Notes: a model not told the origin generated them from the letters alone. Positions 36,301 to 59,639 are shown, numbered from the stretch's first letter. The stretch: DNA of 64,000 nt from Mobula hypostoma (GCF_963921235.1 NC_086110.1:496001-560000); one strand, 5' to 3'. A program made the numbers and translations.

Positions 36301-37237
36301 ACTCAAAATGATTGAAGACACCAGCAACATCGAAAATACCATCGGGGTGAACAGCTTGGAGATCGCAGACGGCGGTTCTGCTCTTTGCTCCTCCGTGCTT
36401 TTCCAATTTTGGAGTTGTTTTGATTTTTTTTTGTATTATCTTGTAGTCTTTTATCTCAACGTGGATGAGTTCAGAATACTTTTACCAATGCTTGCTAAAT
36501 GTATTAAAATTCAGCTCACTGCAAACTCAGGAGGAATCAAGATACCCGGAGGCTGACTAAATTTCAATAATCCTCTAACAACTATAGCTCAAATGCCCGC
36601 GGAAGGCCGCCTACTTACATGTACTGTGGGTCTGCCCTCTGAGGCGGTGGTGGAAAGATATTGTTCTTATGTACGCCCGTTTTTTTTTGCCAGTTGCGAC
36701 CGCAGGATGTACAGGTCGCCAATTACAGCAAGCCTATCAATTCCAAAATGAGTTCAACTGTGCAATCCTCTGACAGAGTGTATGCCTCACAACAACATAG
36801 GCTGACGATGTTGCAAGAAGAGTAGGCGAGGCGGTCGTGGTGAAGTGTTTTTGTACTTGCTTTTCGGAAGGCTGACTGGAAACTGTTGGTGCATTCAAAA
36901 AAGAATGTACCAGCGAAATGTCACGGGATTTCCATAATCAGTCCTTTCGGACAGGATACTCGTAACAGCCAGCGTGAGAGCATTGCACAATGGCAATCGC
37001 AGCCACAGCAAAAAAAAAGGTAAAAAGATTTGTCTTTCGCGCAGCATTTGGAGACGCGTGAGCAACCAGTAACTGAAAAATTAAAGTGTGTTGTTGCGTA
37101 GAGATGTAATTAATATGTGTGCAGATTTGAAGCCGGACACGCCCACTGGAACCAAACCTTACTGGTAGCACTCCTCTCGCTGTTTATTTGTCACTTCGTT
37201 CATTCAACTGTTTCTTTCAGTTTTGTGCTGTGAGATA

Positions 37238-37283
37238 ATGAGACTCTTGCTGCCTTTGATCATCCTGAATGTCAGCGGCACCG
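37238..37283 (+). CDS. Leader exon MRLLLPLIILNVSGT(+1 nt)
   Basis: ATG with A at -3, hydrophobic 15-mer, phase-1 donor G|GTATAC 194 bp upstream of the V exon; typical split IgSF leader. Confidence 0.75.
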
Positions 37284-38215
37284 GTATACTTCTCTCTCGC
37301 TACAATCTTATTTTATATTCAACTGATTAATATTTAATATTGCATTTCATTTGTTATTTTCTATCAACGTAGCTGTATTTTTCTGTTTTTCGTTGAAAGC
37401 CAATTTCATATGATTTGCTTAATCATCCGTGTATCATTTGGACTAGATGTTTCATTTTGTGTTTAAAGCTTTCCCAGCAGCCAAAGGTAATTCTGCGTTC
37501 ACCTTGAGGCAAGATCCCGAGGTTACGGTGACGAGAGGTGACACGGCAAAACTTTACTGCATCTTTCCAATTTTGCCTCATAAATACGTGAGAGTGCATT
37601 GGTGGAGAGACGGGGAAGACAGTTTCCTGGACGAGAGACTCGACAGAAGAATCTATTCATATTTCCTAAACCAGGGAGGTGCTATCTTACAGATTAATGC
37701 TGTGACAGCAGAGGACGCCGGGGTTTATTTCTGCCGGTTGATACATGCCACAGTTTCAAATGGGACAGGTACAAAGCTGATGGTTTACGGTGAGTGCCAG
37801 ACGACCAGGCGAGATCTGTCTGTCCCATTCGCTCGCTCCCCTTGTGTAAAATCTTTTGTGCTTTCTCTATCTAATGGATTTGGGCGTTACTAGGAAAACC
37901 AACATTACTGTCACTGCCGAGCTGATTTAGTGATGCATGATTGTTAGAAGCATACTATGTAGCTAATGGGTAACTTCCTAAATTCTCAATCAGCGATCTG
38001 GGTCAGAACTGATAGTGCTTGATCAGTAAATGCGGCATGCCTTTCCTACCCTGGATAGTAAAATGACTGCAGTCTGTGGCAGTTTTAATCGTATTGATGA
38101 AATGCTAATAGAAGGCTGTTGTAATATCCAATGGGCACACGATAATCAACCTGTCGACGTTGTTGAAAGAGGTTCTATTTGCGGTGCCGAATATGCTAGC
38201 GATCACTGAGACTGA

Positions 38216-38274
<59 letters not shown>

Positions 38275-41200
38275 GTTATTAACTAATTAATTAATTGAAG
38301 TGCATAGAATGACGAATCGTAGACGTGTCGTACAAAGACATTGTCCCAGCTGAATTTGATTTGGCTGATTTCGGTTTATACTCGCCCGAGCCTTCCCATC
38401 AAGTTTCGGTACAATATACTACTGTGGCACCAGCCTCTATGTGGGACAAAAACGAACCCATAACGTTTCTAAATTTCCGCCGTTACAAAGTGCCTTTTCT
38501 TTCTGGACTCACCTGCCACAGGATAGAAAACGAGAATTCTGACCATCCGGCCTATCTCAGCCTCACATAAATCTATAAGACCAAGATTCTTTTTCCATCC
38601 AGACTTCTGATATCATCTCACAAGTACAGCGCTTCTTTCACTGTGTGCATTTCTTCTGGACCAGATTCATTGCTGCCACTTATTTTCCTGAAGTGTATGA
38701 TTTGATCACACTCTTGTTTTTTTTTTCCTGGAACATGCTGGGACTTGAAAGACTGAATGATTGACAATGCAATGATGATCGATCAATTTTATGACATGGA
38801 TCATTCTTTTTGAATGAGCCTTCCGTTTCGCCCAATGTTTTAGTTTCAGAATGGGAAACGACGGTACGATCACTCATAAAGAGTGAGGATTGTAGGCGCA
38901 AATTTATTTGAGTCTTTGCACCTCAAGCTCACATTCTGCGTGAACCATTGTAAATGGAGTTGAACAATAATAATCCATGATGGGAGTACTAATTCAAAGA
39001 GCTTTGGACCTTTCACATAGTCTGAAAAATATCTGTGGCTGTATTTTTGGTTCGGTAAATTGTTTTCGAATTTCAGAAAGTTTTTCTTTCTCACTTTGAT
39101 AAACTTGATTCTAAAGAGCAGGGTCCCTCTTGGTTCAGATTTACATTGTTTAATGCAATTGTTCTTACTCAACCGTGTTCTTCATCTCATTTTACTTTTG
39201 AATAATCCTTGTCCCCGGGTTACCTACTCAAATTAACAACCAAATACCTACTCAAATGAAAACAGGTTGAGTGAAATCAACCTTTTCTCCTTGGAGCGAC
39301 GGAGGATGAGAGGTGACCTGATAGAGGTGTATAAGATGATGAGAGGCATCGATCATGTGGATAGTCAGAGGCTTTTTCCCAGGGCTGAAATGGTTGCCAC
39401 AAGAGGGCACAGGTTTAGGGAGTAGGTACAGAGGAGATGTCAGGGGTACGGTTTTTACACGGAGAGTGGTGAGTGCGTGGAATGGGCTGCCGGCAACGGT
39501 GGAGGAGGCGGATATGTCAGGGATGTACAAGTTGGCGTGACCCATAAAAACAAAGCATTCAACAATCAATTAAAAAAAAACGCAGTTTGGTTTTTGAGGG
39601 ATTGAATCTCACAGAGAAAACAAGTTAAATATTTAAATAAAAAGTTCGAAACTTGTTGCAGAAGACTGAAAGACAATTGTCATTCCATTAAGATATTTTG
39701 ATGCTGCAATGTAATTTGCTTCAAATTTGTTAAAAGCTTTGTGTTGCTAAAACTAAACCATTTTATTTCTAGATCCTCCAACCCCGCTGCGTCTGAAGGT
39801 TATGCTGCCTAAGAACGAGTCAGTCACCCTCGCTCTTATTTGTAACACCGCTGCGTTTTTCCCGCAAGGTCTGAACATAACTTGGTACAAGAATGGGTCG
39901 GATATTATACCTGAGGTTGAGCCAATCAAAACAAAGACAACTGCAGGATTGTACGAGGCTTCAAGCTGCCTGACTGAGACTGAGCCTGTGAATGACGGGA
40001 CAATTTATACCTGCCAGGTTTCTCACATCGCTCTTCCAAACCCTGCCAACATCAGCTACATTTTCTATAACCCAGGTAAGATCAGCTATGCAGCTCCGTG
40101 TATTTTAGTCTCCAAGCGGTTCACACTAAACAACCTTCAACATTTTCAGAATTTAAAAAGAATCGAAACAGTCCATCACCAAGAATGATAATAACTGAAA
40201 GGTAAAACATTTCATAGCATATGTATTATAGCTGTCATCCATAATTTATGAAAATACATTATGGTTATATAACACCACATAAAGTCAGATACATAGAAAC
40301 GTAGAAAATAGGTGCAGGAGTAGGGCATTCGGCCCTTCGAGCCTGCACCGCAATTTATTATGATCATGGCTGATCATCCAACTCAGAACCCCGTCCCAGC
40401 CTTCCCTCCATACCCCCTGAGCCCTGTAGCCACAAGGGCCATATCTAACTCCCTCTTAAACATAGCCAATGAACTGGCCTCAACAGTTTCCTGTGGCAGA
40501 GAATTCCACAGATTCACCACTCTCTGTATGAAGAGGTTTTTCCTAATCTCGGTCCTAAAAGGCTTCCCCTCTATCCTCAAACTGTGACCCCTCGTTCTGG
40601 ACTTCCCCAACATCGGGAACAATCTTCCTGCATCTAGCCTGTCCAATCCCTTTAGGATCTTATACGTTTCAATCAGATCCCCCCTCAATCTTCTAAATTC
40701 CAACGAGTACAAGCCCAGTTCATCCAGTCTTTCTTCATATGAAAGTCCTGCCATCCCAGGAATCAATCTGGTGAACTTTCTTTGTACTCTCTCTGTGGCA
40801 AAGATGTCTTTCCTCAGGTTAGGGGACCAAAACTGCACACAATACTCCAGGTGTGGTCTCACCAAGGCCTTGTACAACTGCAGTAGTACCTCCCTGCTCC
40901 TGTACTCAAATCCTCTCGCTATAAATGCCAGCATACCATTCGCCTTTTTCACCGCCTGCTGTACCTGCATGCCCACTTTCAATGACTGGTGTATAATGAC
41001 ACCCAGGTCTCGTTGCACCTCCCCTTTTCCTAATCGGCCACCATTCAGATAATAATCTGTTTTCCTATTTTTGCCACCAACGTGGATAACTTCACATTTA
41101 TCCACATTAAATTGCATCTGCCATGAGTTTGCCCACTCACCCAACCTATCCAAGTCACCCTGCATCCTCTTAGCATCCTCCTCACTGCTAACACTGCCAC

Positions 41201-44200
41201 CCAGCTTCGTGTCATCCGCAAACTTGGAGATGCTGCATTTAATTCCCTCATCCAAGTCATTAATATATATTGTAAACAACTGGGGTCCCAGCACTGAGCC
41301 TTGCGGTACCCCACTAGTCACCGCCTGCCATTCTGAAAAGGTCCCGTTTATTCCCACTCTTTGCTTCCTGTCTGCTAACCAATTCTCCACCCACACCAAT
41401 ACCTTACCCCCAATAGCGTGTGCTTTAAGTTTGCACACTGATCTCCTGTGTGGGACCTTGTCAAAAGCCTTTTGAAAATCCAAATATACCACATCCACTG
41501 GTTCTCCCCTATCCGCTCTACTAGTTACATCCTCAAAAAATTCTATGAGGTTTGTCAGACATGATTTTCCTTTCACAAATCCATGCTGACTTTGTCCGAT
41601 CATTTCACCGCTTTCCAAATGTGCTGTTATCACATTCTTAATAACTGACTCCAGCAGTTTCCCCACCACCGACGTTAGGCTAACCGGTCTATAATTCCCC
41701 GGTTTCTCTCTCCCTCCTTTTTTAAGAAGTGGGGTTACATTAGCCACCCTCCAATCCTCAGGAACTAGTCCAGAATCTAACGAGTTTTGAAAAATTATCA
41801 CTAATGCATCCACTATTTCTTGGGCTACTTCCTTAAGTACTCTGGGATGCAGACCATCTGGCCCTGGGGATTCATCTGCCTTCAATCCCTTCAATTTACC
41901 TAACACCACTTCCCTACTAACATGTATTTCACTCAGTTCCTCCATCTCACTGGACCTTCTGTCCCTTACTATTTCTGGAAGATTATTTATGTCCTCCTTA
42001 CTGAAGACAGAACCAAAGTAATTATTCAATTGGTCTGCCATGTCCTTGCTCCCCATAATCAATTCACCTGTTTCTGTCTGCAGGGGACCTACCTACCGAA
42101 GACATAAGGAATGGGACCTCGATGTTTCTTTGAATCCAAGTGCCTTTTCTGTCTTTCTACATAACTACATCTTATATGTCACCTTCCCGCCAACCTTTCT
42201 GCGCTAACATAATGCTGCATGATTCCATCCAAATCTGTAAAACTGACCGATGTCAAAGTCAAAGTACAGGTTATTCTGTTATTCACACGTGCATGGGCGC
42301 AGAGGTGCAATGACAATTTAACTTGCAGCAGCATCGTGGGCTCATGGCACCAGATACACAACAATACAAAAAAAAAAATCAACCTATCTTACAAAATTAA
42401 TCAAAAAGAAACACAATTGTATTTAAAAATAATCCATCTGAGTGTGAAGTCGTCATGTGCTTAACTACAGTAATTGCAGTTCTGTGGTTTGGTCCAAAAA
42501 GCCAAATGGTTGAAGGGAAATAGCATTTCTTGCACCAAATGGCGAAGAATTTCTGCCTTCTTTTTCAGTTGACGACTGGTATCTGTGCAAGGATGGCGTG
42601 ACCCGAATGTCGGGGTACCCGATTATGGATATTATCTTCCTGAGGAAACGTCTCCTGTAGATACCTGGAGATTGCAGGGATTAGTCCGTAATGTACTTGG
42701 CATAGTCCACCATTCTACAGCTTCTTACATTGCCACACCAGACCATGGCAAAACAAGTTAGAAAACCTTCAAATGTACATCCGTATATGTTTCCCAACGA
42801 ACCGCGGATGCATGTTTCCCCAGATGATGCTGTCTACAGGATGGCTTCCCTCTCATGATTAACATTAGACAGGGGATAAACATATCTTTACCTCACCCCT
42901 CCCCCGCCTTCCAAAAGGATCCCATACTCCGTGAATCCCTTGTCTATACGTCCCTCCTGACTATTTTCCCTCTAGACACTTATTCGTGCCAGCGACCTAA
43001 GGGCTACACTTCTCAATTCACCTCCGTCCTCAATTCCATTAGGGCCCCAAACTACCCTTGCAGATGAGTAAACACCACCTGCCAATCTGCTGGGGATCTC
43101 GAGTGTATCTAGCGCTCCCGATGCGGCCTTCTCTGTATTGTTGAAGCTCGTCATTACTGGGCCTCTGCTTCTTTGACCACTTATGCTCCATTCACCAAAA
43201 GCGGGAATTCCAAATTCCATTCCCGTTTCAACATGTCGGTGCATTGTCTGCTCTAGTTCCAAGATGATGCAACATTTGGAGTGGAGGAGCAATGCCTTAT
43301 ATTCTGTTTGAGTAGACTCCAACCTGATGGCATGATTATCTATGTCTCCTTCGGGTAAAAATATTTTCCCTCCCGGTCCCCTGTTCTACCATCCCAATAC
43401 CACCCAACTTTTTATCCTACGGCCAACTCTCCCCTCCTATCAGATCCTTTCTTCTTCAGCCCTTTACCTTTTCAACCAACCTGGCTTCACCTGTCACCTT
43501 CTAGATATCCTCCTTCGCCCTCCCCCCACGTTTTTATTCTGGAGTCTTTCCTCTTTATTACCAGTACTGAAAATACTGGCGTCTTGGACCGAAACGTCGA
43601 CCGTTCCTTCATTTCCATAGAGGCTTGGTGCCCTGTTGAGTTCCTTCAGCGTTATGTGGGTGTTGCTCTGGATTTCCAGCAGCTGCAGACTTCCTGGTGG
43701 TCAGGAGGCACAGAAGCCTGAGGTCCAGCACGGCCGAGTTTCGGAAAAGCCGTTTCTTTTCCGGCATTCCGTTCATGAACTAGCCTTGAAAACTCTGATT
43801 GGTACAGTATAGGCACACTCTGAACACTTTGATCTTCTGCATCAAACAGAACGCGTTTGGTCTTCTCTTCTGTATTGTAAAAACTGTGTATAATTTATAT
43901 TATGTTCTTCTTTTCTTGTGAATGCTGAATACACAGTCACATGCCGTCCGATGCTGCTGGGAGTATACAGTGCTTCTTCTGCACCTGTAGATACATGTTC
44001 CTTTGCAAAGGACAATAATTTCGACGGATTTTGGACCTTCGGTGAGAAGGCAAGTCACTTAACCTCCTAAGAAGTTAAAGCTGCCCTTGCTCCTTCCTTG
44101 TGATTGCATCTAAATAGTCGGCCTTGAACTCATATGGCAGCGCCTAGGAATTGTCATCAAGATGGCAACATTCGTCCCTTGATTTTGAAAATTTGATAGC

Positions 44201-47200
44201 TGGTTCTAAACCGCAACTCTTCCCGAAAGAAATCTAATACGCTGGGGTCATGTTATCAATCCTGCGATGTAGTTTTGTTTTGACGTCGATGGCGTTGCTC
44301 CTCATTGGGATGCAAAGGTGTCGTGAACCACGGGAAGCAGATTTCTGAAATAAGAATGATACCGAGAAGATGGGTTTCCTTGTGTAAGTGAGATAGCTCA
44401 GAAACCTTCACTGGTAGTTATCTGAAAGCAGGACGTCGTTTTGGTGGTGATACATGCTTTCTGCAGCGCAGAAATCCATAGTATGAGTGAGCAGCCATCA
44501 GTATGCACATCTAGGTATTGTACTACCTAATCAGCTGTCTATATACATCGCAACGTTGAGGCCTTTCTGATGTCCCCGTTGGACTGGAGTAGGTTTGTGC
44601 GCACAACTTCACCAAAGATACGTGTGAATATTGCCCCAAAACATTGCATAGTTAATGTAAGTTAACAATACCTCTGACAAATTCGGAATTGATTCATTGA
44701 TTTGAATTAGTAACATAAATCAGCGAATGAGCCTGCAGTCTGCGGGAATGACCGTGAAGCTCTTGCAGTGTACAACAACCCCACCTCTAACCCCGTAATA
44801 CTGTCATGGTCCGGTCCGTGAAGTCCGTATTCCGGTTCATGGTCCAGTCCATAACTCCTTATTCCACTGTTTCTGGTTTACCCCAATTTCTGCTGTAGGC
44901 ACATGATTCTCTCTTTTTTTTTTGCCTGAGATGTAAATACCTCCGCAAACCAGGGATTCCCTGCTGGACTGTTCTGTTCCCTTCCTTGTCTTTCCCCCCT
45001 CGCCTGACTCTCTGCCTGGATACCGTTTGCTGCTACCTAGTGTTGGGAAATGTTTCTGTGTCCACGCCTTCGCTTGGTGAGTCCGGCCGTTTGCCGCCAC
45101 CTTGAGCTGTATCTGTCTCCTCATGTTCAGCGTTCTGTGTATGAGTCCCGGCCCTACGTCCTGTTCCCAAGGAGGGGTCACGGCTCTGTGTTCCGTGCTT
45201 CCGTCTCTTCTCGTCCAAGGCTCCGTGCTCCCGTCTCTTCTAATCCAAGGCTCCGTGCTCCCGCCTTTTCTAGTCCAAGGCTCCGTGCTCCCGTCTCTTC
45301 TAGTCCAAGGCTCCGTGCTCCCGCCTTTTCTAGTCCAAGGCTCCGTGCTCCCGTCTCTTCTAGTCCAAGGCTCCGTGCTCCCGTCTCTTCTAGTCGAAGG
45401 CTCCGTGCCCCCGTCTCTTCTAGTCCAAGGCTCCGTGCTCCCGTCTCTTCTAGTCCAAGGCTCCGTGCTCCCGTCTCTTCTAGTACAAGGCATCGTGCTC
45501 CTGAAGGCCCTCATCCAGTCCATGCCTAGTCCCGTCCTATCAGAATCCTGTCCATGTGACTTTACCTGTCCTTGTGGCTCTCCCTACACAGGTGTTCCTC
45601 ACCCAAGCCACGTTCAGTCCTGTAGCCTCGTCTTGTCCTCGTCTAGTTCTGGAGTCCGAGCCTGAGTCAAGTCCCAGGTTCTGGGTCCTTGCCCAGTCTC
45701 TGGCTCGGAGTCCATACCCAAGCTTCGAAGTACCCTAGACTCAAGACCCAAGGCCTGTCTCGAAGCCTCAAGCCTCAAGACCCTAAGCCTGTCTCCAACC
45801 CTCAAGCCTCAAGACCACAAGCCTGTCTCCAAGACTCAAGCCTCAAGACCCCAAGCCTGTCTCCAATCCGCAAGCCTCACGAACCCAAGCCTGTCTCCAA
45901 GCCTCAAGCCGCAAGACCCCAAGCCTGTCTCCAAGCTTCAAGCCTCAAGACCCCAAGCCTATCTCCAATCCTCAAGCCTCAAGACCCCAAGCCTGTCTCC
46001 AAGCCGCAAGCCTCAAGACCCCAGCCTCCCGTCTGGTAGCCATGTCATGACCTTGCTTAGTACTGGGGACCGAGCCCGAGGCAAGACCGAGTTTCTGGGT
46101 CCTTGTCCAGTCCAAGCACAGGCTACAAGTCCATGGTTCCTAGTCCTGCTCCCGCTTTCCCATGCCCAGACTCCTAGTTTATAGTTATTTACCCTTGTCT
46201 GTATCCTGCCACGTCCCAGCTCTAGTCAAATCATTTTCCTTGTACTTCAGTGTCCGTGTCTTCCATTTGGGTCCGCCATCAAGGCCCCCCGCCCCCCTGC
46301 ATTGTGATGGTTCATTATCCATCTTTCCATCTTCTCTACGGACTACTTCGAAGATGTTCCGTTATGATATCAATGCCTAAATAAACAAAGGTAACCGATA
46401 TTAATTAGTGGGGAAAAAAAAACTTACTACCATTAGATCAGCAGTTACGAATTCCAAATTAAAAAAAAATCAGCGAAGCCCTGAATAATAAAAGGTAAAG
46501 CGAAGAAATGGGAGTTCCGAACAATATATAAACTCAGTTGTAACTGATAACACGTTGTTACACTTCCAAGAGTGTTACACAGTGTTAAAATCAAGATCGA
46601 ACACAGCTAGATTAAGTATGAGCTACATTCAGATCGTAATGCTCGGACACACCTAAAAAACAAGGAAATTTATGTTGGACTGTTGTTTCCGGATTTCACT
46701 TCGGCTTTCAACACTGCTGCCCCGCAGGCTTGGTGAACACTATCCTACCTCTCAGTCTAAATAAACAACTGCGCAATTATGTGTTGAACTTCATACACTA
46801 CAGACCTCAGGTAGTCAAGTTGCACAACTGTTTCTCCCTCCTCATCATCCTCAACAACTGTGCCCCCCCCCCCACCTTCCCCAGGGCATTGTCAGGTTCT
46901 TCGATATAACGACAGTGTGGGGCTCATAACCAACAACGATGCAACGGCATACAGAAATGAAGTGGAAGAGCTCGAGGCCTGCTGCCAGGCAAATAACTTC
47001 TTCCTCTATGTCACTTAGCAAGGAAGATGGTTGTCGACTTCTGGAGAACTCGCACCCTCTGCATCGGCGGCTCAGTACTGGTAACTACGAGCAGTTTGAA
47101 ACTCCTGCGAGTGCACATCTCAAACACATCTCATGACCCCAGAACACATCCTACACAATTACAAATGTTCGCCAGTGCGATAGGGAGCTGCAGCATGGGA

Positions 47201-50200
47201 AAGTAGCTTTGTATGTTTATTCGCCCGAACAGTCATAATCCAATATTAGATAAAGTAATGCGACAAGCATGAAATATTTGCTGTATTACAATTTAAATCA
47301 CGTGTACAATATAAAGCTCACCACTAAATTAATTATTAACATTACAGATTCTGGGGAGTACAATTCGTTTGATCAACGGATTTATGGCTACCTGGGAACA
47401 GGAATAATATTGTTCCTGACTGTCATTTTCATTGTGATAGGCAGAGGTAAGATTCTGGACATTTTTTTCATCTTGGGTTAATCATATATTTAACCATTTG
47501 AATTAAACAATACTATGCATTTGGCTACTTGTTCGGATACTATATATCTGTTCGAATAATCGAAAATTAGACGACCTGTGACACATCATACCCATCTCCT
47601 TGAGTGCAGCGTCTCCCGAAAGTTAACCTCTGCATTAGTGTCCGACTGGTTGGTGAACGGTCTGTGCTGGGAATTGTTGGTCCAGATTCGGAAATAAGGA
47701 AGGGTAACTGTTTATAACGGAAAATATAGTGGTTAAGAATTGATCCGAATATTTACAAACTGAGGAAAACTCTTAATACTTACATTTTAAATAATCAATC
47801 GTGATGCTAGTTGTACAGTATAGGAGTAAATAAAGACAAAGTGAAAAAGTGAGGAAATTATAATATTTTCATGACTTTGAATATGGGCTAGCGGGTTTCC
47901 AGCAACAACGCTTCACTGCCACGGACGAAAATGAATTAAGTCTTATCCTTCTTAATCACATCCACTCTAGGAATGCGCAGGATGTCGAATGGGCGCGACA
48001 ACACCAGGGTAAGGATCTTCTAATGCAGTATATATATTCAAAGTATGCTGGGCAATTTCACCTAAATATTGCATTCGCTTGACCTTCCAAATACCATTAT
48101 ATACATTTCTGTTCGCTGTATGATCAAATTCAACGACAATATTAGGACAACTGATATTAGGTATTATTATCATCACATGCAAGCACAGTGCAGAGAGCTC
48201 CTGAATATTAGTTGACATGAGAAGCGGAATCACGGATATTGACGTAAGATAGAAGCAGATTGGCTTGTTTGCTGGTACAATATAATCTAAATTCAATTCC
48301 CTTTTCAATGCACTCCCAATATACCCCAATCCATTAGGCTGTTATTTAACCTCCGCGCCATTCTCTCGGTCTACAACAATATCTGCACAATTTTGAACAT
48401 ATTTACTAAACTGGATTCCAAGGACTGTAGATCTAATGCTATTTACACTTCGGACAGCTGTGTACACTGCCCATCATTTCAGGGTAACCAAGCTCCATTC
48501 CATAGACTCTGTCTATACTTCCCACCGTACGCAACAACAGTCAAATGTACATTTGTCTTTTGTACTGCTACCCCGCCCGTCAACAAATGGAGGATACAAA
48601 CACCTGGAAGCATGGATCACCAGATTCAAGCACAGCTCTTATCCCGCGCTTCAAAGATAATTTGAAGCTCCCTTAAAATGATAAAGTGGGCTCTTGACCA
48701 CACAGCCTACCTCGTTATGGCATCTTGCTGTTTCCCCGCACTTTACTCTGCATCTTGTTGTTTGCCCGCACTTTACTCTGCATCTTGTTGATTTCCCGCA
48801 CTTTACTCTGCATCTTGTTGTTTCCCCGCACTTTACTCTGCATCTTGTTGTTTTCCCGCACTTTACTCTGCATCTTGTTGTTTTCCCGCACTTTACTCTG
48901 CATCTTGTTGTTTTCCCGCACTTTACTCTGCATCTTGTTGTTTTCCCGCACTTTACTCTGCATCTTGTTGTTTCCCCGCACTTTACTCTGCATCTTGTTA
49001 TTTCCCCGCACTTTACTCTGCATCTTGTTGTTTCCCCGCACTTTACTCTGCATCTTGTTGTTTTCCCGCACTTTACTCTGCATCTTGTTGTTTTCCCGCA
49101 CTTTACTCTGCATCTTGTTGTTTCCCCGCACTTTACTCTGCATCTTGTTGTTTCCAGCACTTTACTCTGCATCTTGTTGTTTCCCCGCACTTTACTCTGC
49201 ATCTTGTTGTTTTCCCGCACTTTACTCTGCATCTTGTTGTTTCCCCGCACTTTACTCTGCATCTTGTTGTTTCCCCGCACTTTACTCTGCATCTTGTTGT
49301 TTTCCCGCACTTTACTCTGCATCTTGTTGTTTCCCCGCACTTTACTCTGCATCTTGTTGTTTTCCCGCACTTTACTCTGCATCTTGTTGTTTCCCCGCAC
49401 TTTACTCTGCATCTTGTTGTTTTCCCGCACTTTACTCTGCATCTTGTTATTTCCCCGCACTTTACTCTGCATCTTGTTGTTTGCCCACACTTTACTCTGC
49501 ATCTTGTTATTTCCCCGCACTTTACTCTGCATCTTGTTATTTCCCACACTTTACTCTGCATCTTGTTGTTTTCCCGCACTTTACTCTGCATCTTGTTGTT
49601 TTCCCGCACTTTACTCTGCATCTTGTTGTTTTCCCGCACTTTACTCTGCATCTTGTTGTTTTCCCGCACTTTACTCTGCATCTTGTTGTTTCCCCGCACT
49701 TTACTCTGCATCTTGTTGTTTTCCCGCACTTTACTCTGCATCTTGTTGTTTCCCCGCACTTTACTCTGCATCTTGTTGTTTTCCCGCACTTTACTCTGCA
49801 TCTTGTTGTTTTCCCGCACTTTACTCTGCATCTTGTTGTTTTCCCGCACTTTACTCTGCATCTTGTTGTTTTCCCGCACTTTACTCTGCATCTTGTTGTT
49901 TCCCCGCACTTTACTCGGCATCTTGTTGTTTCCCCGCACTTTACACTGCATCTTGTTGTTTCCCCGCACTTTACACTGCATCTTGTTGTTTCCCCGCACT
50001 TTACTCTGCATCTTGTTGTTTCCCGCACTTTACTCTGCATCTTGTTGTTTCCCCGCACTTTACTCTGCATCTTGTTGTTTCCCGCACTTTACTCTGCATC
50101 TTGTTGATTTCCCGCACTTTACTCTGCATCTTGTTGTTTCCCCGCACTTTACTCTGCATCTTGTTGATTTCCCGCACTTTACTCTGCATCTTGTTGTTTC

Positions 50201-53200
50201 CCCGCACTTTACTCTGCATCTTGTTGTTTCCCCGCACTTTACTCTGCATCTTGTTGTTTCCCCGCACTTTACTCTGCATCTTGTTGTTTCCCCGCACTTT
50301 ACTCTGCATCTTGTTGTTTTCCCGCACTTTACTCTGCATCTTGTTGTTTCCCCGCACTTTACTCTGCATCTTGTTGTTTTCCCGCACTTTACTCTGCATC
50401 TTGTTGTTTTCCCGCACTTTACTCTGCATCTTGTTGTTTTCCCGCACTTTACTCTGCATCTTGTTGTTTTCCCGCACTTTACTCTGCATTTTGTTGTTTG
50501 TCCGCACTTTACTCTGCATCTTGTTGTTTCCCCGCACTTTACTCTGCATCTTGTTGTTTCCCCGCACTTTACTCTGCATCTTGTTGTTTTCCCGCACTTT
50601 ACTCTGCATCTTGTTGTTTTCCCGCACTTTACTCTGCATCTTGTTGTTTCCCGCACTTTACTCTGCATCTTGTTGTTTTCCCGCACTTTACTCTGCATCT
50701 TGTTGTTTTCCCGCACTTTACTCTGCATCTTGTTGTTTTCCCGCACTTTACTCTGCATCTTGTTGTTTGCCCACACTTTACTCTGCATCTTGTTGTTTTC
50801 CCGCACTTTACTCTGCATCCTGTTATTTCCCCGCACTTTACTCTGCATCTTGTTGTTTTCCCGCACTTTACTCTGCATCTTGTTGTTTCCCCGCACTTTA
50901 CTCTGCATCTTGTTATTTCCCCGCACTTTACTCTGCATCTTGTTGTTTTCCCGCACTTTACTCTGCATCTTGTTGTTTCCCCGCACTTTACTCTGCATCT
51001 TGTTGATTTCCCGCACTTTACTCTGCATTGTGTTGTTTCCCCGCACTTTACTCTGCATCTTGTTGTTTCCCCGCACTTTACTCTGCATCTTGTTGTTTTC
51101 CCGCACTTTACTCTGCATCTTGTTGTTTTCCCGCACTTTACTCTGCATCTTGTTATTTCCCCACACTTTACTCTGCATCTTGTTATTTCCCCGCACTTTA
51201 CTCTGCATCTTGTTGTTTTCCCGCACTTTACTCTGCATCTTGTTGTTTTCCCGCACTTTACTCTGCATCTTGTTGTTTCCCGCACTTTACTCTGCATCTT
51301 GTTGTTTTCCCGCACTTTACTCTGCATCTTGTTGTTTTCCCGCACTTTACTCTGCATCTTGTTGTTTTCCCACACTTTACTCTGCATCTTGTTGTTTGCC
51401 CACACTTTACTCTGCATCTTGTTGTTTTCCCGCACTTTACTCTGCATCTTGTTATTTCCCCGCACTTTACTCTGCATCTTGTTGTTTTCCCGCACTTTAC
51501 TCTGCATCTTGTTGTTTCCCCGCACTTTACTCTGCATCTTGTTGATTTCCCGCACTTTACTCTGCATCTTGTTGTTTTCCCGCACTTTACTCTGCATCTT
51601 GTTGTTTGCCCGCACTTTACTCTGCATCTTGTTGTTTCCCCGCACTTTACTCTGCATCTTGTTGTTTTCCCGCACTTTACTCTGCATCTTGTTGTTTCCC
51701 CGCACTTTACTCTGCATCTTGTTGTTTCCCGCACTTTACTCTGCATCTTGTTGTTTTCCCGCACTTTACTCTGCATCTTGTTGTTTTCCCGCACTTTACT
51801 CTGCATCTTGTTGTTTTCCCGCACTTTACTCTGCATCTTGTTGTTTTCCCACACTTTACTCTGCATCTTGTTGTTTTCCCGCACTTTACTCTGCATCTTG
51901 TTGTTTGCCCGCACTTTACTCTGCATCTTGTTGTTTGCCCGCACTTTACTCTGCATCTTGTTGTTTTCCCACACTTTACTCTGCATCTTGTTGTTTCCCC
52001 GCACTTTACTCTGCATCTTGTTGTTTCCCCGCACTTTACTCTGCATCTTGTTGTTTTCCCGCACTTTACTCTGCATCTTGTTGTTTCCCCGCACTTTACT
52101 CTGCATCTTGTTGTTTCCCCGCACTTTACTCTGCATCTTGTTGTTTTCCCGCACTTTACTCTGCATCTTGTTGTTTTCCCACACTTTACTCTGCATCTTG
52201 TTGTTTTCCCACACTTTACTCTGCATCTTGTTGTTTTCCCGCACTTTACTCTGCATCTTGTTGTTTTCCCGCTCTTTACTCTGCATCTTGTTGTTTGCCC
52301 GCACTTTACTCTGCATCTTGTTGTTTCCCCGCACTTTACTCTGCATCTTGTTGTTTCCCCGCACTTTACTCTGCATCTTGTTGTTTTCCCGCACTTTACT
52401 CTGCATCTTGTTGTTTCCCCGCACTTTACTCTGCATCTTGTTGTTTCCCCGCACTTTACTCTACATCTTGTTGTTTTCCCGCACTTTACTCTGCATCTTG
52501 TTGTTTCCCCGCACTTTACTCTGCATCTTGTTGTTTCCCCGCACTTTACTCTGCATCTTGTTGATTTCCCGCACTTTACTCTGCATCTTGTTGTTTTCCC
52601 GCACTTTACTCTGCATCTTGTTGTTTTCCCGCACTTTACTCTGCATCTTGTTGTTTTCCCGCACTTTACTCTGCATCTTGTTGTTTCCCCGCACTTTACT
52701 CTGCATCTTGTTGTTTTCCCGCACTTTACTCTGCATCTTGTTGTTTTCCCGCACTTTACTCTGCATCTTGTTGTTTGCCCGCACTTTACTCTGCATCTTG
52801 TTGTTTCCCCGCACTTTACTCTGCATCTTGTTGTTTCCCCGCACTTTACTCTGCATCTTGTTGTTTTCCCGCACTTTACTCTGCATCTTGTTGTTTTCCC
52901 GCACTTTACTCTGCATCTTGTTGTTTCCCCGCACTTTACTCTGCATCTTGTTGTTTCCCCGCACTTTACTCTGCATCTTGTTGTTTGCCCGCACTTTACT
53001 CTGCATCTTGTTGTTTTCCCGCACTTTACTCTGCATCTTGTTTCTGCCTCTTGTTGTTTCCCCGCACTTTACTCTGCATCTTGTTGTTTCCCCGCACTTT
53101 ACTCTGCATCTTGTTGTTTCCCCGCACTTTACTCTGCATCTTGTTGTTTCCCCGCACTTTACACTGCATCTTGTTGTTTCCCCGCACTTTACTCTGCATC

Positions 53201-55839
53201 TTGTTGTTTTCCCGCACTTTACTCTGCATCTTGTTGTTTCCCCGCACTTTACTCTACATCTTGTTGTTTTCCCGCACTTTACTCTGCATCTTGTTGTTTG
53301 CCCACACTTTACTCTGCATCTTGTTGTTTCCCCGCACTTTACTCTGCATCTTGTTGTTTCCCCGCACTTTACTCTGCATCTTGTTGTTTTCCCGCACTTT
53401 ACTCTGCATCTTGTTGTTTCCCCGCACTTTACTCTGCATCTTGTTGTTTCCCCGCACTTTACTCTGCATCTTGTTGTTTGCCCACACTTTACTCTGCATC
53501 TTGTTGTTTCCCCGCACTTTACTCTGCATCTTGTTGTTTCCCCGCACTTTACTCTGCATCTTGTTGTTTGCCCGCACTTTACTCTGCATCTTGTTGTTTC
53601 CCCGCACTTTGCACTGCATCTTGTTATTTCCCCGCACTTTACTCTGCATCTTGTTGTTTTCCTGCACTTTACTCTGCATCTTGTTGTTTTCCCGCACTTT
53701 ACTCTGCATCTTGTTGTTTCCCCGCACTTTACACTGCATCTTGTTGTTTTCCCCGCACTTTACACTGCATCTTGTTGTTTTCCCGCACTTTACTCTGCAT
53801 CTTGTTATTTCCCCGCACTTTACTCTGCATCTTGTTGTTTCCCCGCACTTTACTCTACATCTTGTTGATTTCCCGCACTTTACTCTGCATTTGTATCTGT
53901 TTTACCTTTCTGGCATGCTAAATACAATTTTATTTTCACAGTAGTCCAGTACATGTGACAATAATTCTCAAATGTACCAACTTGCCTGCTTAATGATAGG
54001 GAGTTATAGTTGAACTATATAAACTATATTGTTCCATTTACTCTGGACAGCAAAGGGCAATTGATGCTCTCCTTAGATTCAGAATCGCTTTTTGAATTGT
54101 TACCTAATCTATCATAGCCACTCTAGCCTTACTTTTTCAGCTGTAGACTCTGGAAGTTATTTTCAAAATCAGATACCTTATTCTCCAACTCAATAAAGAG
54201 TTAGACTGTGCTATGGCGGGCCTTCAACACGGGACCGCACACAACACGACTGCTTATTACTGCGTTCCATTTGCATTCCATTGAATCATGAAAGTCCCGT
54301 TCTCTGGACGGTTACGACAAAAACGGATTCGTTATGTCATCACGAATGCACCCCAGCAGCTCTCCGTTTACTGCATTACAGTATATGACTATTGAGTTCA
54401 GGCATGATTATTATGGTACAGTCACACCCGTCTCTGACTTCCATTGCTACATCCACACTAAGGACATAATAGTTTTTAAAAAGCTCACAAGAACACAAGT
54501 GATAAAAGCAGCAGCAGGCCACCTTGCTCGTCGAGCCGACTGCGTTATTCAGCAGCATCATGACTGATCTAGCTGTGATCTCAGATTCAGCTAATCTGTC
54601 TCGTAAGCCTTAATATTCTCGCTGTGCAAAAATCTAACTGTGTCCTAAATAGATTAAATAAGGTAGCCGAAAATGCTCCCCAAGCATAGAATTCGACAAA
54701 AAAAAACTCCTAGAATAGCAGTTTCTGCTCATTTTTGTCCTTAATTCCTCCTCCGAATTGGGGTTATGGCTCCTAGTTCTTCAATATCTGTACCTTACAT
54801 ATATCCCTCCCATTATATTGTATGTTTCCATAAGATATCAGCCCATGCTTCTGAATTACCGCGTACATGCAACTCCCATGCAACTCAATCTATCCCAGGA
54901 GTAATTCACTCCTCTCTGGAATAAAACTTTGAATCTTCATTGAATCGCCTCCGATGCCAGGTTATCCATTCTCAAGTAAGAAAACTACAATTGCACGGTG
55001 TACTTCGGATGCGTCCACAGCCGTGTCATGTGCAATTACTGCTGTTAAATACAAGCCCTCTCTCAACAAAGGAAACCATACCGTTTGCCTTCTCGATAAC
55101 CTCTCTCGTCAGGTAACCAATATCTTGCGATACATTCAAACACTCTCAAGGCCCTCTGTAAAACAGCATGCTGAAACTTTTCAACGTATAATTAATACTC
55201 GATATTCAGTTTTTTTTTCCTTTGAAAGTTGATGATCTCTCATTTGCTAAAGTTGTACACCATCAGCCAAACATTTGCCCGCTTTCTTAAATTTGGGCTT
55301 CTCTGTCGAAAAGAGAAGATTGTTGAAAATTGACTTATTCAAAATTGAGGCGCTCCGTTACCATCTTCACAGGGCATCAAATATTATTTGTATTAACTCA
55401 AGTTATCAATATTTTTTGTTTTGTTATTTTCGATGCGCAAGCCAAGTCTTCTCCATTTATGACTAGAGATCGGTAGAAGAGGATAAAGCAGTTTTACTGT
55501 TTGGTTGCTTCATCAAAGGAAACGCAAGATTTAAATTATAACTGACTTTTCAAAGCTGTCGGCACTTTGTGCGTTGCTGTCATATACAGTACGATGTTCC
55601 TTTTGGGCTATGGCCAAATATTTATTGCAAAAACATACATTTTATTGCTGGAAAAATTATAACAGATTGTTGATGATTTTCAGACAAAGCAATCCGAAGA
55701 TGATCAAAAGCTAACATACGTCACTCTAAATATGGCTCGGGCCAATACGTCCACTATAGTCAGAGATTCTGAACAGAATACAATATATGCCCAGGTATGT
55801 AGAACGAGTAAATTCATCGAGGAACTAGCAAATCAATGA
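37238..55839 (+). CDS. Spliced gene: non-rearranging VJ-C1-TM-ITIM/ITSM Ig-superfamily receptor (SIRP/NITR/PRARP-like), about 317 aa; exons 37238-37283, 37478-37789, 39773-40075, 47348-47446, 47971-48008, 55684-55839
   Basis: Six GT-AG-bounded exons with intron phases 1,1,1,1,0 that join in frame (46+312+303+99+38+156=954 nt) with no internal stop; recognisable leader, V, C1, TM and tyrosine-motif segments. Confidence 0.82.
37478..37789 (+). CDS. Ig V-set domain exon with J-like G strand
   Basis: B-strand Cys (LYC, 37558), C-strand Trp (HWW, 37600), LQINAVTAEDAGVYFC (Cys 37732), NGTGTKLMVY; acceptor ttcccag, donor G|GTGAGT. Confidence 0.93.
38215..38274. repeat. (TATC)n microsatellite in the V-C1 intron
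   Basis: About 14 tandem TATC units. Confidence 0.95.
39255..39535 (+). mobile_element. CR1 3' fragment in the V-C1 intron
   Basis: RMRGDLIEVYKMMRGIDHVDSQRLFP motif. Confidence 0.8.
39773..40075 (+). CDS. Ig C1-set domain exon
   Basis: LICNTAAFFPQGLNITWYKNG ... GLYEASSCL ... YTCQVSH motifs of C1 domains; acceptor ttttatttctag, donor G|GTAAGA, phase 1 both ends. Confidence 0.93.
40292..42090 (-). mobile_element. Young 5'-truncated CR1 with uninterrupted 559-aa RT ORF, in the C1-TM intron
   Basis: ORF 40383-42062 (SKFADD); near-identical to 5167-6968. Confidence 0.95.
42850..43700 (+). mobile_element. Penelope-like element 3' fragment (GIY-YIG remnant + terminal repeat)
   Basis: Decayed RS.CGLL.I.E.R GIY-YIG-region sequence and terminal gaaacgtcgac motif. 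Confidence 0.6.
44802..46309 (+). mobile_element. TG..CA-type LTR-like element with internal tandem repeats
   Basis: Starts tgtcatggtccgg; 30-bp repeats 45192-45490 and degenerate about 46-bp repeats 45740-46020; related to 56879-57768. No clean TSD. Confidence 0.55.
46640..47200 (+). mobile_element. Rex1/Babar-like LINE RT fragment
   Basis: Decayed LF.DFTSAFNT, VRFFD..TV.GLITNND.TAYR.EV motifs. Confidence 0.6.
47348..47446 (+). CDS. Stalk + transmembrane exon DSGEYNSFDQRIYGYLGTGIILFLTVIFIVIGR
   Basis: About 21 hydrophobic residues with no charged residue; acceptor attacag, donor G|GTAAGA; phase 1 matches the C1 exon. Confidence 0.82.
47971..48008 (+). CDS. Juxtamembrane cytoplasmic mini-exon (G)MRRMSNGRDNTR
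   Basis: Pyrimidine tract + CTAG acceptor, strong donor AGG|GTAAGG, 38 nt converting phase 1 to phase 0 as needed; basic residues after the TM. Confidence 0.7.
48719..53890. repeat. 30-bp satellite array, about 170 copies, in the last coding intron
   Basis: Unit catcttgttgttt(t/c)cccgcactttactctg with sporadic 29-bp variants. Confidence 0.98.
55684..55839 (+). CDS. Signalling exon with ITIM LTYVTL and ITSM TIYAQV
   Basis: TKQSEDDQKLTYVTLNMARANTSTIVRDSEQNTIYAQVCRTSKFIEELANQ*; phase-0 acceptor ttttcag (in-frame alternative at 55666); Tyr residues 23 aa apart. Confidence 0.72.
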   Translation, partial: TKQSEDDQKLTYVTLNMARANTSTIVRDSEQNTIYAQVCRTSKFIEELANQ

Positions 55840-56589
55840 TAAAATAATTTTAAACAATGGTCATTGCTGTATTTATGATTTTGTGTTTTTCCATGTAACA
55901 GAATGCAGTCTCGCGCATTTAAACACGCTCACTTTGTCTCTTTAGTTTTATTGCAATTGATTGGTGCTATTCGATGTCGCTGGCCGGGACAGACTTTATT
56001 GCCTATTATTTCCATTGAGTAGGTGTTGGTGGCAGCCGCCTTGAACAGTTTCAATCCATCTGCTAGGTTCACCCTGCTATTGGGAGATAGTTTTCAATGT
56101 ATGGCATGTGACGATGGAGAAAATGATGGAATACACCCAACATAGGGCAGTGAGAGTTTCTCATACCTCCCATGACGAGAGTGAAAACATAGGTCAATAG
56201 ACTAATAATAATGACATGGTTGTTTTACATTGAATTGTGCTAATTTTCTGGAGAGTTGTCGAAACTGCACTTACCTGAAGCAGTGAAGTTAATTCTGCCA
56301 CGCCATATTTATGGTTTGGAGAAAGAGGAAAGATTTTGCAATGTCTGGAGTTGAGTCGCTTACTCCAAGGTTTCCAAGTTTTGAAACGCTATGATATTTA
56401 CGTGGCTAGTCCAGTCAAATTAATAGTTCGTGATGACCATCAGGGAGTTAATTTCACCTGGTTCAGATATGGCTTTGGTGCGGAGTGAGAGACATTAAAG
56501 CGGGACGATAGTTCACAAACTTTAAGACCACGATATATAGAACAGATTTAGGCCATCTGGATCATCATGTCTGTTCCACCAGTTCATCT

Positions 56590-59230
56590 TGGGGTCAGGG
56601 GGTATGGAGGGAAGGCTGGGGCGGGGTTCTGAGTTGGATGATCAGCCATGATCATAATAAATGGCGGTGCAGGCTCGAAGGGCCGAATGGTCTACTCCTG
56701 CACCTATTTTCTATGTTTCTATGTTTCTCCCTAAATCCCTTCATGCCTTGACCAATTAAGTTCGATCAAACTTTGCCTATAAATATGAATAAGGATATGG
56801 CCTCCACAGTTGCCTGTAGCAAAGAAATCCATATGTTCACCAGTCTCTGGCTAAAGAAATTCCTCCTTATCTCATTTCTGTTACACGTGCGGAGCAAGGA
56901 TGGACCCAAATACAGGACACAAACACGTTTAGTAGGGTTAACTAAATTGAGGTCATTCCTCGTTACAAGGAGAGCAAAGCGGAAGTGGGAATAACGTAAT
57001 GGACAAGGACTCAAGGTCCGGGCTAGGACTCGGAACACGGACCCCGGAGCCAGGACTTGATACTTGGAACCCCGGAGCCAGGACCTGATACTTGAATCTC
57101 AGAGCTTGGAGTTGGAACTCAAACACAAGACAATGAACACCGAGCCGGAGCTCCTGCTTTGACACAGGATATGGAGCCAGTACTCATCTTATTTATTGGA
57201 CAGCCTCAGACACAGGACGTAAAACACTGAGCCGGGAATCCTCCTTAGACACAGGACAGAGTCTGGACTCTTCTAGACACAGGGTCAGGATCCTTCTAGA
57301 GTACAGGGCCACGACCCCTTTTTAGACACAGGACATGGATACGGAGACGACACGACGATAGGCAGTACTATTAAAGGCCACAAATTTCGCTCCAAGCAGC
57401 GGCGAGCTCTTGACTTATCCCGGCGGGTTAAATTTGACGGACCCGCTTTGGCAAGGGAAGGCGGCTTGCTGGCACTTACTTCGGTAAGACAGTTATCTTG
57501 CTTGGGCAAGAAACTTAGTTGGCTCCGGCCAGATGTCATTTGCTCGCACTAGCTTCGGTGATTTCGTTAAAGCCCCAGAAAGCTCTCGCGCCGAACGGCA
57601 AAAGTCCGAGACTTATAAATTGCCGGTTCAGTTGAGAGTAAATTGCCTTTAATCACCAAGCCCGAGGGACACGGGAAAACAGGGAATTAAAGGGAAACAG
57701 GGAGTCAACGGTCCGGTTCGTAAAACAAAGAAAGTAAATTTAAAGTGAACGTGATCCGGACCATGCCAGTTCTAAAAGCACGTCCTTCTATTCTGTAGTT
57801 ATGTCCTCTGGTCTTAGATAATCCCACAATAGGAACTATCTTCCCCAGGTCCACACCAACGAGCCCTTCCACCATTCGGTAGGTTCCAATGAAGTCTCTC
57901 CTCTTTCTTTTGAATCCTGGTAAATACTGGCCCAGAGCCATCAAGCACTCTTCACATGATAAGCCATTGAATCCTGGAATCATTCTTATTAACCTCCTTT
58001 GAACCCTGTCCAATTTCAGCATATGTTGTCTAAGATAAGGGGCCCAAAGCTGCTCACTATATTCCAAGTGAGTCCTCACTAGTGCTTTATAACATTTCAA
58101 AATCACTTCTTTTCTTTTATATTCTAGTCCTCTTGAAAGAAATGTTAAGTTTGCATTCGCCTTCCTCACAAAAGACTCAACCTGCAAATTAACCTTTATG
58201 AAATCATGTACAAGGACGACCGAGTCCTTTTGCACATCAGACTTTTCTATTTTCTCTCCATTTAGAAAATGTTCAGCCCTTCCATTTCCTCTAGCAAAGA
58301 GCATGGTTATGCACTTCACAACACAACTGTCTTCAGTTTCTTTGCCCATACTCCTAATCTGTCAGAGACCTTTTGCAGCCTCTCTCGGTCCTCAAAATTG
58401 TCTGCATCTCCACCTATCTACATATTGTCTGCAAATTTTGCAACAAAGCCATATATTCTATCATCCAAGTCATTGATATATAATGTAAAAATATTTGGTT
58501 CCATCACAGACCCCGTGGAAGATCACTAGTCACCGGCAGCCTGACAGAAAAAAAAACTCCTTCATTCTCACCCTTCATCTCCAGGCAATCAGCTACTGCT
58601 TTATTCATGCTAGAATCTATCCTGTAATACCATGGGCCCGTAGCTTGTTTAGCAGTCTCATGTGTGCCACCTTGTCAACGGCTTTCTGATAGTCCAAGTA
58701 CACAACATCAATCGATTCTCCTTTGTCTATCCTGCTGGTTATTTCTTCAAAGAATTCCAGCTGATTTGTCAGGCAATTTTCCCCTTGGGGAATCAATGCT
58801 GACTACGATCTATTTCAACATGCGCCTCAAGTAACCTGAGACCTCATCCTTAGCAGTGAACACTAACATCTTCCCGACCAATGCTGTCAGACTAACTGGC
58901 CTATAGCTTCCCTTTTTTCAGCTTTTATTCCTTCTTCAAGAGTGAAGTGACATTTGCAATTTTCTAGTCTTCTGGAGCTATTCCAGAATCTACTGATGCT
59001 TGAAATATCATTATTAATGACCGTATAATCAACTCAAGCACCTCTTTTAGAACTCTTGGGTGTGCGCCATCTGAGCCATACTTATCTACATAAAAACCCT
59101 TCAGTTTCCCAAGGACCTTCCGTCTAGTTATTGTAACTTCACAAACTTCATGCCTTTTGACATTTGGGACTTCTACCATACTGATAGTGTCTTCCACAGT
59201 GAAGACTAATGCAACGTATTTATTATGGGT
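56590..59230. mobile_element. CR1 3' end (+, 56590-56730) abutting a CR1 RT fragment (-, 56730-59230)
   Basis: First part is the reverse complement of the 5167/40292 tail; second part gives the decayed RT ORF 57705-58349. Confidence 0.8.
56879..57768 (-). mobile_element. LTR-like element related to 44802-46309, inserted in CR1
   Basis: Minus strand begins tggcatggtccgg and ends gtgtaaca; CR1 ctcat..tctg / ttctaaa resumes across it. Confidence 0.6.
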
Positions 59231-59639
59231 AGTTAATTTGAATGTCCCCTTAAGTTCATTGTCCAGTTTTGCCTGATAACACTGACATTTACATTCCTAT
59301 AAGTTGGGCTTTGTGTCCATGCTTGGACCATTGCTAAGATGAGTTTTGGAGCCAAACGTATCTGGCGATACAATGGGATAAACCGGTGAGCAGATTGCAA
59401 GTGAGTAAGTGAATCTTTCATAGCTGTCCTAATGACCAAGAACCGAATGGTTTGTTGGAAGTTAGCCTTGTTGTATTTTGCCACGGCTTCTGAAAAGGGT
59501 AATTTTAACATTGTTACCGTTTGAAGCCAATATAATAACTGCACAGTGAACGCTTGGCTGTACTTTGGATTATATTTTCTTCCCATGTATTCCTCTATTC
59601 TGAGACTATTGGATACTGGCAGTAATCTCGGCATCATTG

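Follow-up and report, generated by a model that had tools for sequence, protein, structure and literature searches.

The best explanation of the evidence gathered on a 64,000-nucleotide stretch of the genome of the devil ray Mobula hypostoma (GCF_963921235.1, NC_086110.1:496001-560000; hereafter the window, meaning this whole stretch, with positions counted from its first letter) is one that we consider probable when taken as a whole, namely that it holds exons 1 to 6 of an intact-looking devil-ray gene for a type I membrane receptor and that at least one more exon lies past 55794, beyond the window. These exons encode, in order, a signal peptide, one V and one C1 domain, a short stalk, an uncharged transmembrane segment (TM), a basic stop-transfer sequence and a cytoplasmic tail with an immunoreceptor tyrosine-based inhibitory motif (ITIM). 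Judged by its sequence, the gene is a ray member of an orthologue lineage inside a large, clustered V-C1 family of cartilaginous fishes, and the family as a whole looks like a paired inhibitory/activating system.

Gene model and transcript evidence

An earlier reading of the stretch, made from the DNA alone and called here the original prediction, had proposed six exons that splice in frame to about 317 amino acids (aa). The exons are found where they had been placed: AG and GT flank every exon border, the phase-1 pattern typical of immunoglobulin (Ig) genes is preserved, and the joined frame amounts to 320, 317 or 316 aa, depending on the choice among three in-frame acceptors of the V exon. 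The parts of the gene are as follows, X3 and X4 being RNA runs described below.

37150..37237, plus strand: 5' untranslated region; the X3 contig alignment begins at 37150, which is contig position 96, and the transcript start lies at least about 95 nt further 5'
37238..37283, plus strand: exon 1, split leader MRLLLPLIILNVSGT, phase 1, with ATG and donor CCG/GTATAC
37481..37789, plus strand: exon 2, V-set domain with germline-joined J-like G strand NGTGTKLMV (Pfam V-set, 5.3e-9)
39773..40075, plus strand: exon 3, C1-set domain (Pfam C1-set, 4.3e-11)
47348..47446, plus strand: exon 4, stalk and uncharged TM (YLGTGIILFLTVIFIVIG), at X3 contig positions 839-938, directly after the C1 piece
47971..48008, plus strand: exon 5, 38-nt basic juxtamembrane linker (MRRMSNGRDNTR), with the joint 47446/47971 in X3 and X4
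55684..55794, plus strand: exon 6, cytoplasmic, with ITIM LTYVTL, ending ...TIYAQ, phase 0 at both ends, donor CAG/GTATGT
55795..55839, plus strand: C-terminus VCRTSKFIEELANQ and stop of the original prediction, most likely the start of intron 6 and coding only if the donor is skipped

The most direct support for this model comes from RNA, which was available as Logan contigs, a resource from which rare transcripts are dropped, so that absence can be false. A single 1574-nt contig of run X3 carries all five junctions: it aligns to 37150-37283, 37481-37789 and 39773-40075 and then, in continuous numbering, to 47348-47446 and 47971-48008; its loose end before the TM piece matches the end of the C1 exon, and its loose end after 48008 is identical, letter for letter, to the first 30 bases of exon 6 (55684-55713). 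The loose end in run X4 is the same, and the joints from TM to linker to exon 6 are likewise present there. Because one X3 contig bears the whole series and X4 repeats the last joints, all five junctions are real, and transcripts joining C1 to the TM and ITIM exons, on whose existence the original prediction had staked itself, are thus seen in the X3 contig. The attribution of this RNA is a separate matter. The X3 variants translate exactly to P0157, the 'NCR3LG1-like isoform X1' of Mobula birostris, and the X3 RNA is therefore that of the sister-species orthologue, with about 97% DNA and 95-96% protein identity to the window gene. What the RNA upholds is accordingly the full set of junctions, though as spliced in M. 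birostris and not from the window copy.

Other details of the exons are in keeping with this structure. As the original prediction had noted, the list of open reading frames (ORFs) holds none of 50 aa or more over the leader, linker or signalling exons. The 38-nt exon 5 is the sole stop-free basic AG..GT candidate of its length between the TM exon and exon 6, and its presence in the X3 and X4 contigs, together with a TM without any charged residue, bears out the uncharged TM and basic linker that had been claimed. A search of 37201-38100 for the heptamer and nonamer of recombination signal sequences (RSS) found none, and the V and J-like strands share one exon, so that the gene is non-rearranging; with Pfam assigning V-set and C1-set domains, the proposed germline V(J)+C1 ectodomain stands. 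No further family exon occurs elsewhere in the window on either strand, nor does any other exon of the Ig superfamily.

Two of the joints have alternatives. The acceptor AGs of the V exon are clustered at 37467-37480, the last two forming a CAGCAG pair, and allow V-exon starts at 37469, 37478 and 37481. The leader joint runs from 37283 to 37481 in X3 and from 37283 to 37469 in X2, the former acceptor being used in the M. birostris contig and protein P0157 and the latter in a paralogue contig; the mature N-terminus may thus differ by up to 4 residues through acceptor choice. Similarly, the V-C1 joint 37789/39773 is present in X1, X6 and X3, and an alternative joint, 37789/39869, occurs in paralogue contigs of X1 and X2 and matches the 32-residue gap of M. 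birostris isoform X2 (P0002). It uses an acceptor AG at 39867-39868 inside the C1 exon (start 39869) and loses the first 32 C1 residues, including the first Cys. Though this joint recurs in two species, its product should be unable to keep the C1 fold.

The 3' end is where the gene model has to be revised, since the original prediction had taken exon 6 as terminal. Exon 6 ends in ...ACA ATA TAT GCC CAG / GTATGT, a consensus phase-0 donor at 55794/55795, and the orthologues splice onward: after TIYAQ, the sequence TI[HQ]GQ.ESQTEEI.[VI]NADY..KT (TIHGQNESQTEEINVNADYSIKT) follows in both isoforms of M. birostris and in the orthologue from Hypanus sabinus, and remoter family members continue with TKQG... 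and additional tyrosine exons. None of the RNA runs, X3 and X4 included, contains 55800-56300; the X3 contig holds about 485 nt beyond exon 6, which together with the lack of 55800-56300 indicates that the X3 RNA is not read through. No poly(A) signal lies downstream of exon 6 before 56494. A read-through C-terminus as the main form was consequently rejected on account of the strong donor, orthologue splicing, the absence of RNA at 55800-56300 and the lack of a nearby poly(A) signal, and VCRTSKFIEELANQ, the stop at 55839 and the immunoreceptor tyrosine-based switch motif (ITSM) TIYAQV are most likely intron sequence. On this comparison of sequences there are seven exons or more, and the gene ends outside the window. 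The M. birostris gene spans 27.3 kb, and the same span from about 37.1 kb would end at about 64.4 kb, so that the missing exon would lie at the end of the window or just beyond it.

This revision also alters the signalling motifs. The ITIM of exon 6, LTYVTL, appears in orthologues as VTYVTL, LTYLTL and LKYVTL, and it fits [S/I/V/L]xYxx[I/V/L] in a tail behind an uncharged TM. The second tail tyrosine lies in TIYAQ(T), which does not match TxYxx[V/I]; TIYAQV fits that pattern only if the donor 55794/55795 is skipped, and orthologues read TIYAQ/T. Of the ITIM and ITSM originally proposed, then, the conserved ITIM survives, and the ITSM belongs to the unspliced reading.

Several observations weigh against an intact, expressed inhibitory receptor gene at this exact place. 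Scans of 55797-64000 for the next exon (tblastn at word size 2, motif searches and an exhaustive BLOSUM comparison using the Mobula and Hypanus peptides) did not find it there. With the read-through set aside, a single canonical ITIM is left. The runs labelled as the window's species (X1, X2 and X6) yield V and C1 contigs 94-98% identical to the window gene; the C1 variants of X1 and X2, however, translate to P0004 (Mobula hypostoma LOC134356408 isoform X2), and X6 has the same V-exon variants. The same-species RNA of X1 and X2 was for this reason rejected as support for the window copy. X1 and X2 hold no contigs on the TM or linker exons of the window copy, and its predicted protein is absent from the results of the protein database searches. 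Given that the own-species V and C1 contigs are those of the paralogue and that no predicted protein surfaced, the exact window copy may not be expressed in its own species.

These observations, in the RNA, the databases and the unseen terminal exon, are those to be expected if the window copy were silent or becoming a pseudogene and the working genes were its M. birostris orthologue and the neighbouring paralogues. We nonetheless consider this improbable. All six exons are open and have consensus splice sites, absence from Logan contigs, which drop rare transcripts, can be false, and the 27.3-kb span of the orthologous gene places the missing exon just past the window. Further, about 10 of the 18 nucleotide differences from M. 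birostris in V plus C1 alter the protein, for a rough ratio of nonsynonymous to synonymous change (dN/dS) of about 0.4 by our own estimate, a value below 1 that would fit a constrained yet fast-moving immune gene.

Domains, fold and putative signalling

Pfam assigned the V exon to the V-set and the next exon to the C1-set, far above the C2-set (5e-9 and 4e-11, rounded), in agreement with the domains originally proposed. Against the PDB, the C1 exon matched IgM Cmu4 best (8.7e-18), followed by IgA, SIRPalpha (3e-12), MHC class I alpha3, UrIg2 and TAPBPR, and the V exon was closest to antibody variable domains, mostly single-chain variable fragments and light chains. The mature ectodomain contains 6 N-glycosylation sequons, a seventh, NVS, being in the leader. 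For searches with a full spliced protein, the near-identical M. birostris protein P0157 stood in for that of the window as query, and the AlphaFold (AF2) model of the orthologue ectodomain comprises two Ig domains with a predicted local distance difference test score (pLDDT) of 93. Foldseek placed lambda light chains at the top of the PDB at about 24% identity, with a TM-score of only 0.41-0.47; among reviewed proteins the scores of CADM2, BTNL9, SKINT, B7-H6, SIRPalpha and Ig lambda were all about 1e-13, and the extended receptors superposed better, with TM-scores of 0.7-0.8, and of 0.76-0.81 for those of the B7 and SIRP type. The domains are thus antigen-receptor-like, and the V-C arrangement is predicted by the model to be extended as in receptors of the B7/SIRP type, not bent like a light chain. 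Structure search was set aside as a discriminator of families, as it does not tell SIRP, B7, BTN, CADM and Ig light chain apart.

An extra unpaired Cys is present in the C1 domain of rays (Mobula, Hypanus and Leucoraja); in the window model it is C188, in SSCLTE of exon 3. Shark orthologues are without it and have instead a Cys at the start of the TM (GCLGAG). The two placements may represent differing routes to disulfide-linked dimers.

By analogy with known inhibitory receptors, the V domain of the window receptor would bind a ligand, a Src-family kinase would phosphorylate the ITIM tyrosine, phosphatases of the SHP-1/SHP-2 type would dock on the phosphorylated ITIM, and the docked phosphatases would damp activating signals in the same cell. 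The family pattern further suggests that near-identical activating twins would oppose this effect, coupling to an adaptor with an immunoreceptor tyrosine-based activation motif (ITAM) through a TM Arg. We infer ligand binding, phosphorylation and SHP-1/SHP-2 docking from this likeness.

A putative example of such a twin is encoded in the same species. The paralogue P0004 (LOC134356408 isoform X2, 128 aa) has an identical leader, and its retained part of C1 is 94% identical; its TM, FGYVARGVMFF..., bears an Arg, and its tail is 11 residues long. This TM and tail are the pattern that would be expected of an activating twin. In the X1 and X2 contigs LOC134356408 shows a 1-nt deletion, relative to the window gene, near the V-exon start (opposite window position 37493), because of which its V-containing transcripts would be out of frame, and RefSeq isoform X2 of this locus (P0004) skips V entirely. 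It is thus possible that this candidate activating twin has no V domain or is in decay.

The chondrichthyan family and its possible relatives

The C1 exon, searched against 1.8 billion representative proteins, returned 215 matches below 1e-10, and among the best 150 of these 215 the whole ectodomain is covered by 73 proteins. All 30 of the 30 clusters looked up come from sharks, rays or chimaeras. The looked-up members of each species share one chromosome-scale contig and have mostly neighbouring accession numbers, from which it follows that the family is clustered. Its motifs WW[RK]xGE, NGTGxxLxV, PPTPL, N[IL]TWYKNG and YTCQVSH are invariant or near-invariant alignment columns, and all are present in the window protein. 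The tails are of two kinds, either long and ITIM-rich, with the consensus LTYAxL...TEYAQL, or short behind an Arg-bearing TM. Other family members from the window's ray are 31-40% identical to the window protein in V and 39-50% in C1.

Within this family the window gene has orthologues in M. birostris, Hypanus, Leucoraja, Heptranchias, Heterodontus, Chiloscyllium and Callorhinchus, with identities (five values each) of 96/60/58/59/42% in V and 95/72/55/60/53% in C1. In a quick IQ-TREE maximum-likelihood run on 65 ectodomains, the window protein fell into a 7-row clade with Mobula (M. birostris), Leucoraja, Heptranchias, Heterodontus, Chiloscyllium and Callorhinchus, with 99% support in the SH-like approximate likelihood-ratio test (SH-aLRT). 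The branching of this clade follows the species tree from chimaera to rays, and the orthologue lineage is therefore as old as the cartilaginous fishes. The automatic names borne by family members are inconsistent, among them SIRPalpha-like, SIRPbeta-like, Ig lambda-like, tapasin-related-like, NCR3LG1-like, CD276 homologue and MHC class II-like. No description of a shark or ray V-C1-ITIM family was found in the literature searched, which included the UrIg2 and shark major histocompatibility complex (MHC) papers, and the family is apparently large, machine-predicted and unstudied. The description of the gene as hidden applies only to the protein set of the window genome; in M. birostris the orthologue has already been predicted, as 'NCR3LG1-like', with two isoforms; likewise, its novelty survives in a cartilaginous-fish family for which no dedicated literature was found, but the gene is one copy in a large cluster and not a singular gene.

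The family was also compared with receptors already known. Against solved structures, a family profile gave 2e-39 for the IgA heavy chain, 7e-36 for UrIg2 (9dmx), 1.1e-30 for SIRPalpha (2wng) and 8.5e-28 for SIRPgamma, and its alignment spans the V-C1 part of UrIg2 and of SIRPs from end to end. Neither profile nor structure comparison singles out one known family.

A rather unlikely possibility is that the family is the cartilaginous-fish counterpart of the SIRPs, having a SIRPalpha-like inhibitor and a SIRPbeta-like activating twin and one C1 domain fewer. The general plan is shared: SIRPalpha and SIRPbeta likewise have an N-terminal V domain with a J-like strand followed by C1-set domains, a type I topology, an ITIM tail (which in SIRPalpha recruits SHP-1/2) and near-identical activating twins with a basic TM residue, which the paired Arg-in-TM forms of the cartilaginous-fish family resemble. 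Many family members are automatically named 'tyrosine-protein phosphatase non-receptor type substrate 1-like', the nearest language-model neighbours after the family's own clusters are SIRPalpha clusters (score 0.96), and the end-to-end profile matches to SIRPalpha V-C1 (2wng) and to SIRPgamma point the same way. The tail consensus of the family also resembles the ITIM pairs of SIRPalpha. However, the window gene has one C1 domain to the two of SIRP, a single C1 exon standing between V and TM in the RNA contig and in all orthologues, and one canonical ITIM to the four tyrosine motifs of SIRP. Moreover, its V and C1 domains are no nearer SIRP than Ig, UrIg2 or MHC domains: the V exon alone recovered no SIRP among its top 60 PDB matches, C1 is nearer IgM Cmu4 than SIRP, UrIg2 and Ig heavy chains outscore SIRPalpha in the profile search, and CADM, BTN, SKINT, B7-H6 and SIRPalpha match equally well in structure.

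Other systems resemble the window gene in part. Like the cartilaginous-fish family, the NITRs form a clustered multigene family of germline V(J) receptors, some bearing an ITIM and some a charged TM. Their second domain is of the I-type and not C1, and NITRs are not known outside bony fish. With Ig lambda and T-cell receptor (TCR) chains the gene shares the order V then C1, the J motif GxGTxLxV and phase-1 borders, in line with the place of lambda chains at the head of the Foldseek PDB matches; it differs from them in having neither RSS nor a separate J segment, in possessing a TM and an inhibitory tail, and in its predicted extended V-C arrangement. UrIg and UrIg2 are elasmobranch non-rearranging antibody-like genes in which a split leader and a germline VJ exon precede C1-type domains, of which there are 3 to 11 (9-11 in UrIg2), and each is treated as one MHC- or AgRC-linked gene per species (PMC12227049). 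The split leader and germline VJ are common to the window gene, among non-rearranging PDB entries UrIg2 matches the family profile best, and UrIg2 is likewise auto-annotated as an Ig light chain. In contrast, the window gene has one C1 domain where UrIg and UrIg2 have three or more, carries an ITIM tail and belongs to a multigene cluster; a search of PMC12227049 by term did not turn up ITIM.

It is also conceivable, though unlikely, that the gene belongs to the PRARP lineage as its representative in cartilaginous fishes. It would then be a relic of the precursor of antigen receptors and would pair, as Ig and TCR chains do, in a disulfide-linked dimer. PRARPs were reportedly described by Fu et al. 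in 2019 as non-rearranging VJ-C1-TM-ITIM genes, present as a gene pair from bony fish to birds, and are said to have been discussed as a relic of antigen-receptor ancestry. Compared by description only, the ray gene differs in belonging to a large cluster in sharks, rays and chimaeras, not to a pair in bony fish to birds. What it shares with PRARP is architecture alone (non-rearranging VJ, C1, TM and ITIM); the J-like GxGTxLxV strand, the true C1 domain, the lambda light chains at the top of the PDB fold matches and the retention of the lineage back to chimaeras are also consistent with such an origin. Yet a word-limited profile search for bony-fish and tetrapod relatives found none better than a TCR gamma chain at 3e-8, the ray protein lacks a conserved membrane-proximal Cys (the shark Cys is at the TM start and the extra ray Cys is in C1), and the monomer model superposes on extended receptors better than on bent light chains. 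PMC10751288 cites the PRARP work as a VJ gene family.

Surrounding sequence and wider meaning

The introns of the gene contain repeats, among them the following.

40383..42062, minus strand: ORF of a long interspersed element (LINE) reverse transcriptase, 559 aa, in intron 3 (Pfam RVT_1, 8e-34)
48720..53894, no strand assigned: 30-bp minisatellite of 172 copies in intron 5 (Tandem Repeats Finder score 8965, 94% matches)

The intron-5 minisatellite is strongly asymmetric between strands (AT skew about -0.6), and the ORFs that it shows in most of the six frames, several hundred codons long, are not genes. Intron 3 contains two smaller minisatellites, at 45192-45501 (30 bp, 10 copies) and 45740-46027 (34 bp, 8.5 copies). 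A repeat in intron 2, at 39170-39573, has an enormous depth, up to about 235,000, in each of the four RNA runs; it codes for the C-terminal portion of a LINE reverse transcriptase (…LERRRMRGDLIEVYKMMRG…) with the same tail as the 559-aa ORF at 40383-42062, and it looks like the 3' end of a highly transcribed LINE family. The remaining long ORFs of the window are transposon-derived. One of 218 aa on the minus strand, at 27962-28618, has a GDSL/SGNH lipase-esterase domain (7e-9), lies amid transposon remains and may be a LINE esterase ORF, not a host gene. Retroelement remains are also found at 20783-22831 on the plus strand and 5263-7877 on the minus strand, one with an integrase zinc-binding domain and reverse transcriptase, of the long terminal repeat type, and the other with reverse transcriptase and endonuclease, of the LINE type.

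Taken alone, the window brings a modest gain, that is, one more family member with a corrected gene model. The significance lies in the family to which it belongs. C1-set domains are rare outside Ig, TCR and MHC, and germline-joined VJ-C1 genes supply the material from which ideas on the origin of rearranging antigen receptors are built; the recent UrIg and UrIg2 papers demonstrate that such shark genes are still of current interest. Sharks, rays and chimaeras possess a large family of single V-C1 receptors, arranged in clusters, some with inhibitory tails and some with activating-type TMs, and at least one lineage of it has been retained over the whole history of cartilaginous fishes; this makes testable both the origin of SIRP- and PRARP-like receptors and the existence of paired-receptor arms races in the earliest jawed vertebrates. 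More broadly, it would be a long shot that the orthologue clade, from chimaeras to rays, is the cartilaginous-fish representative of the same ancient non-rearranging VJ-C1-TM-ITIM lineage as PRARP. If this were true, an antigen-receptor-shaped inhibitory chain and its fast-evolving activating twins would stand at the base of the jawed vertebrates, and the lineage would provide a second candidate, besides UrIg, for the type of gene that the RAG transposon entered.

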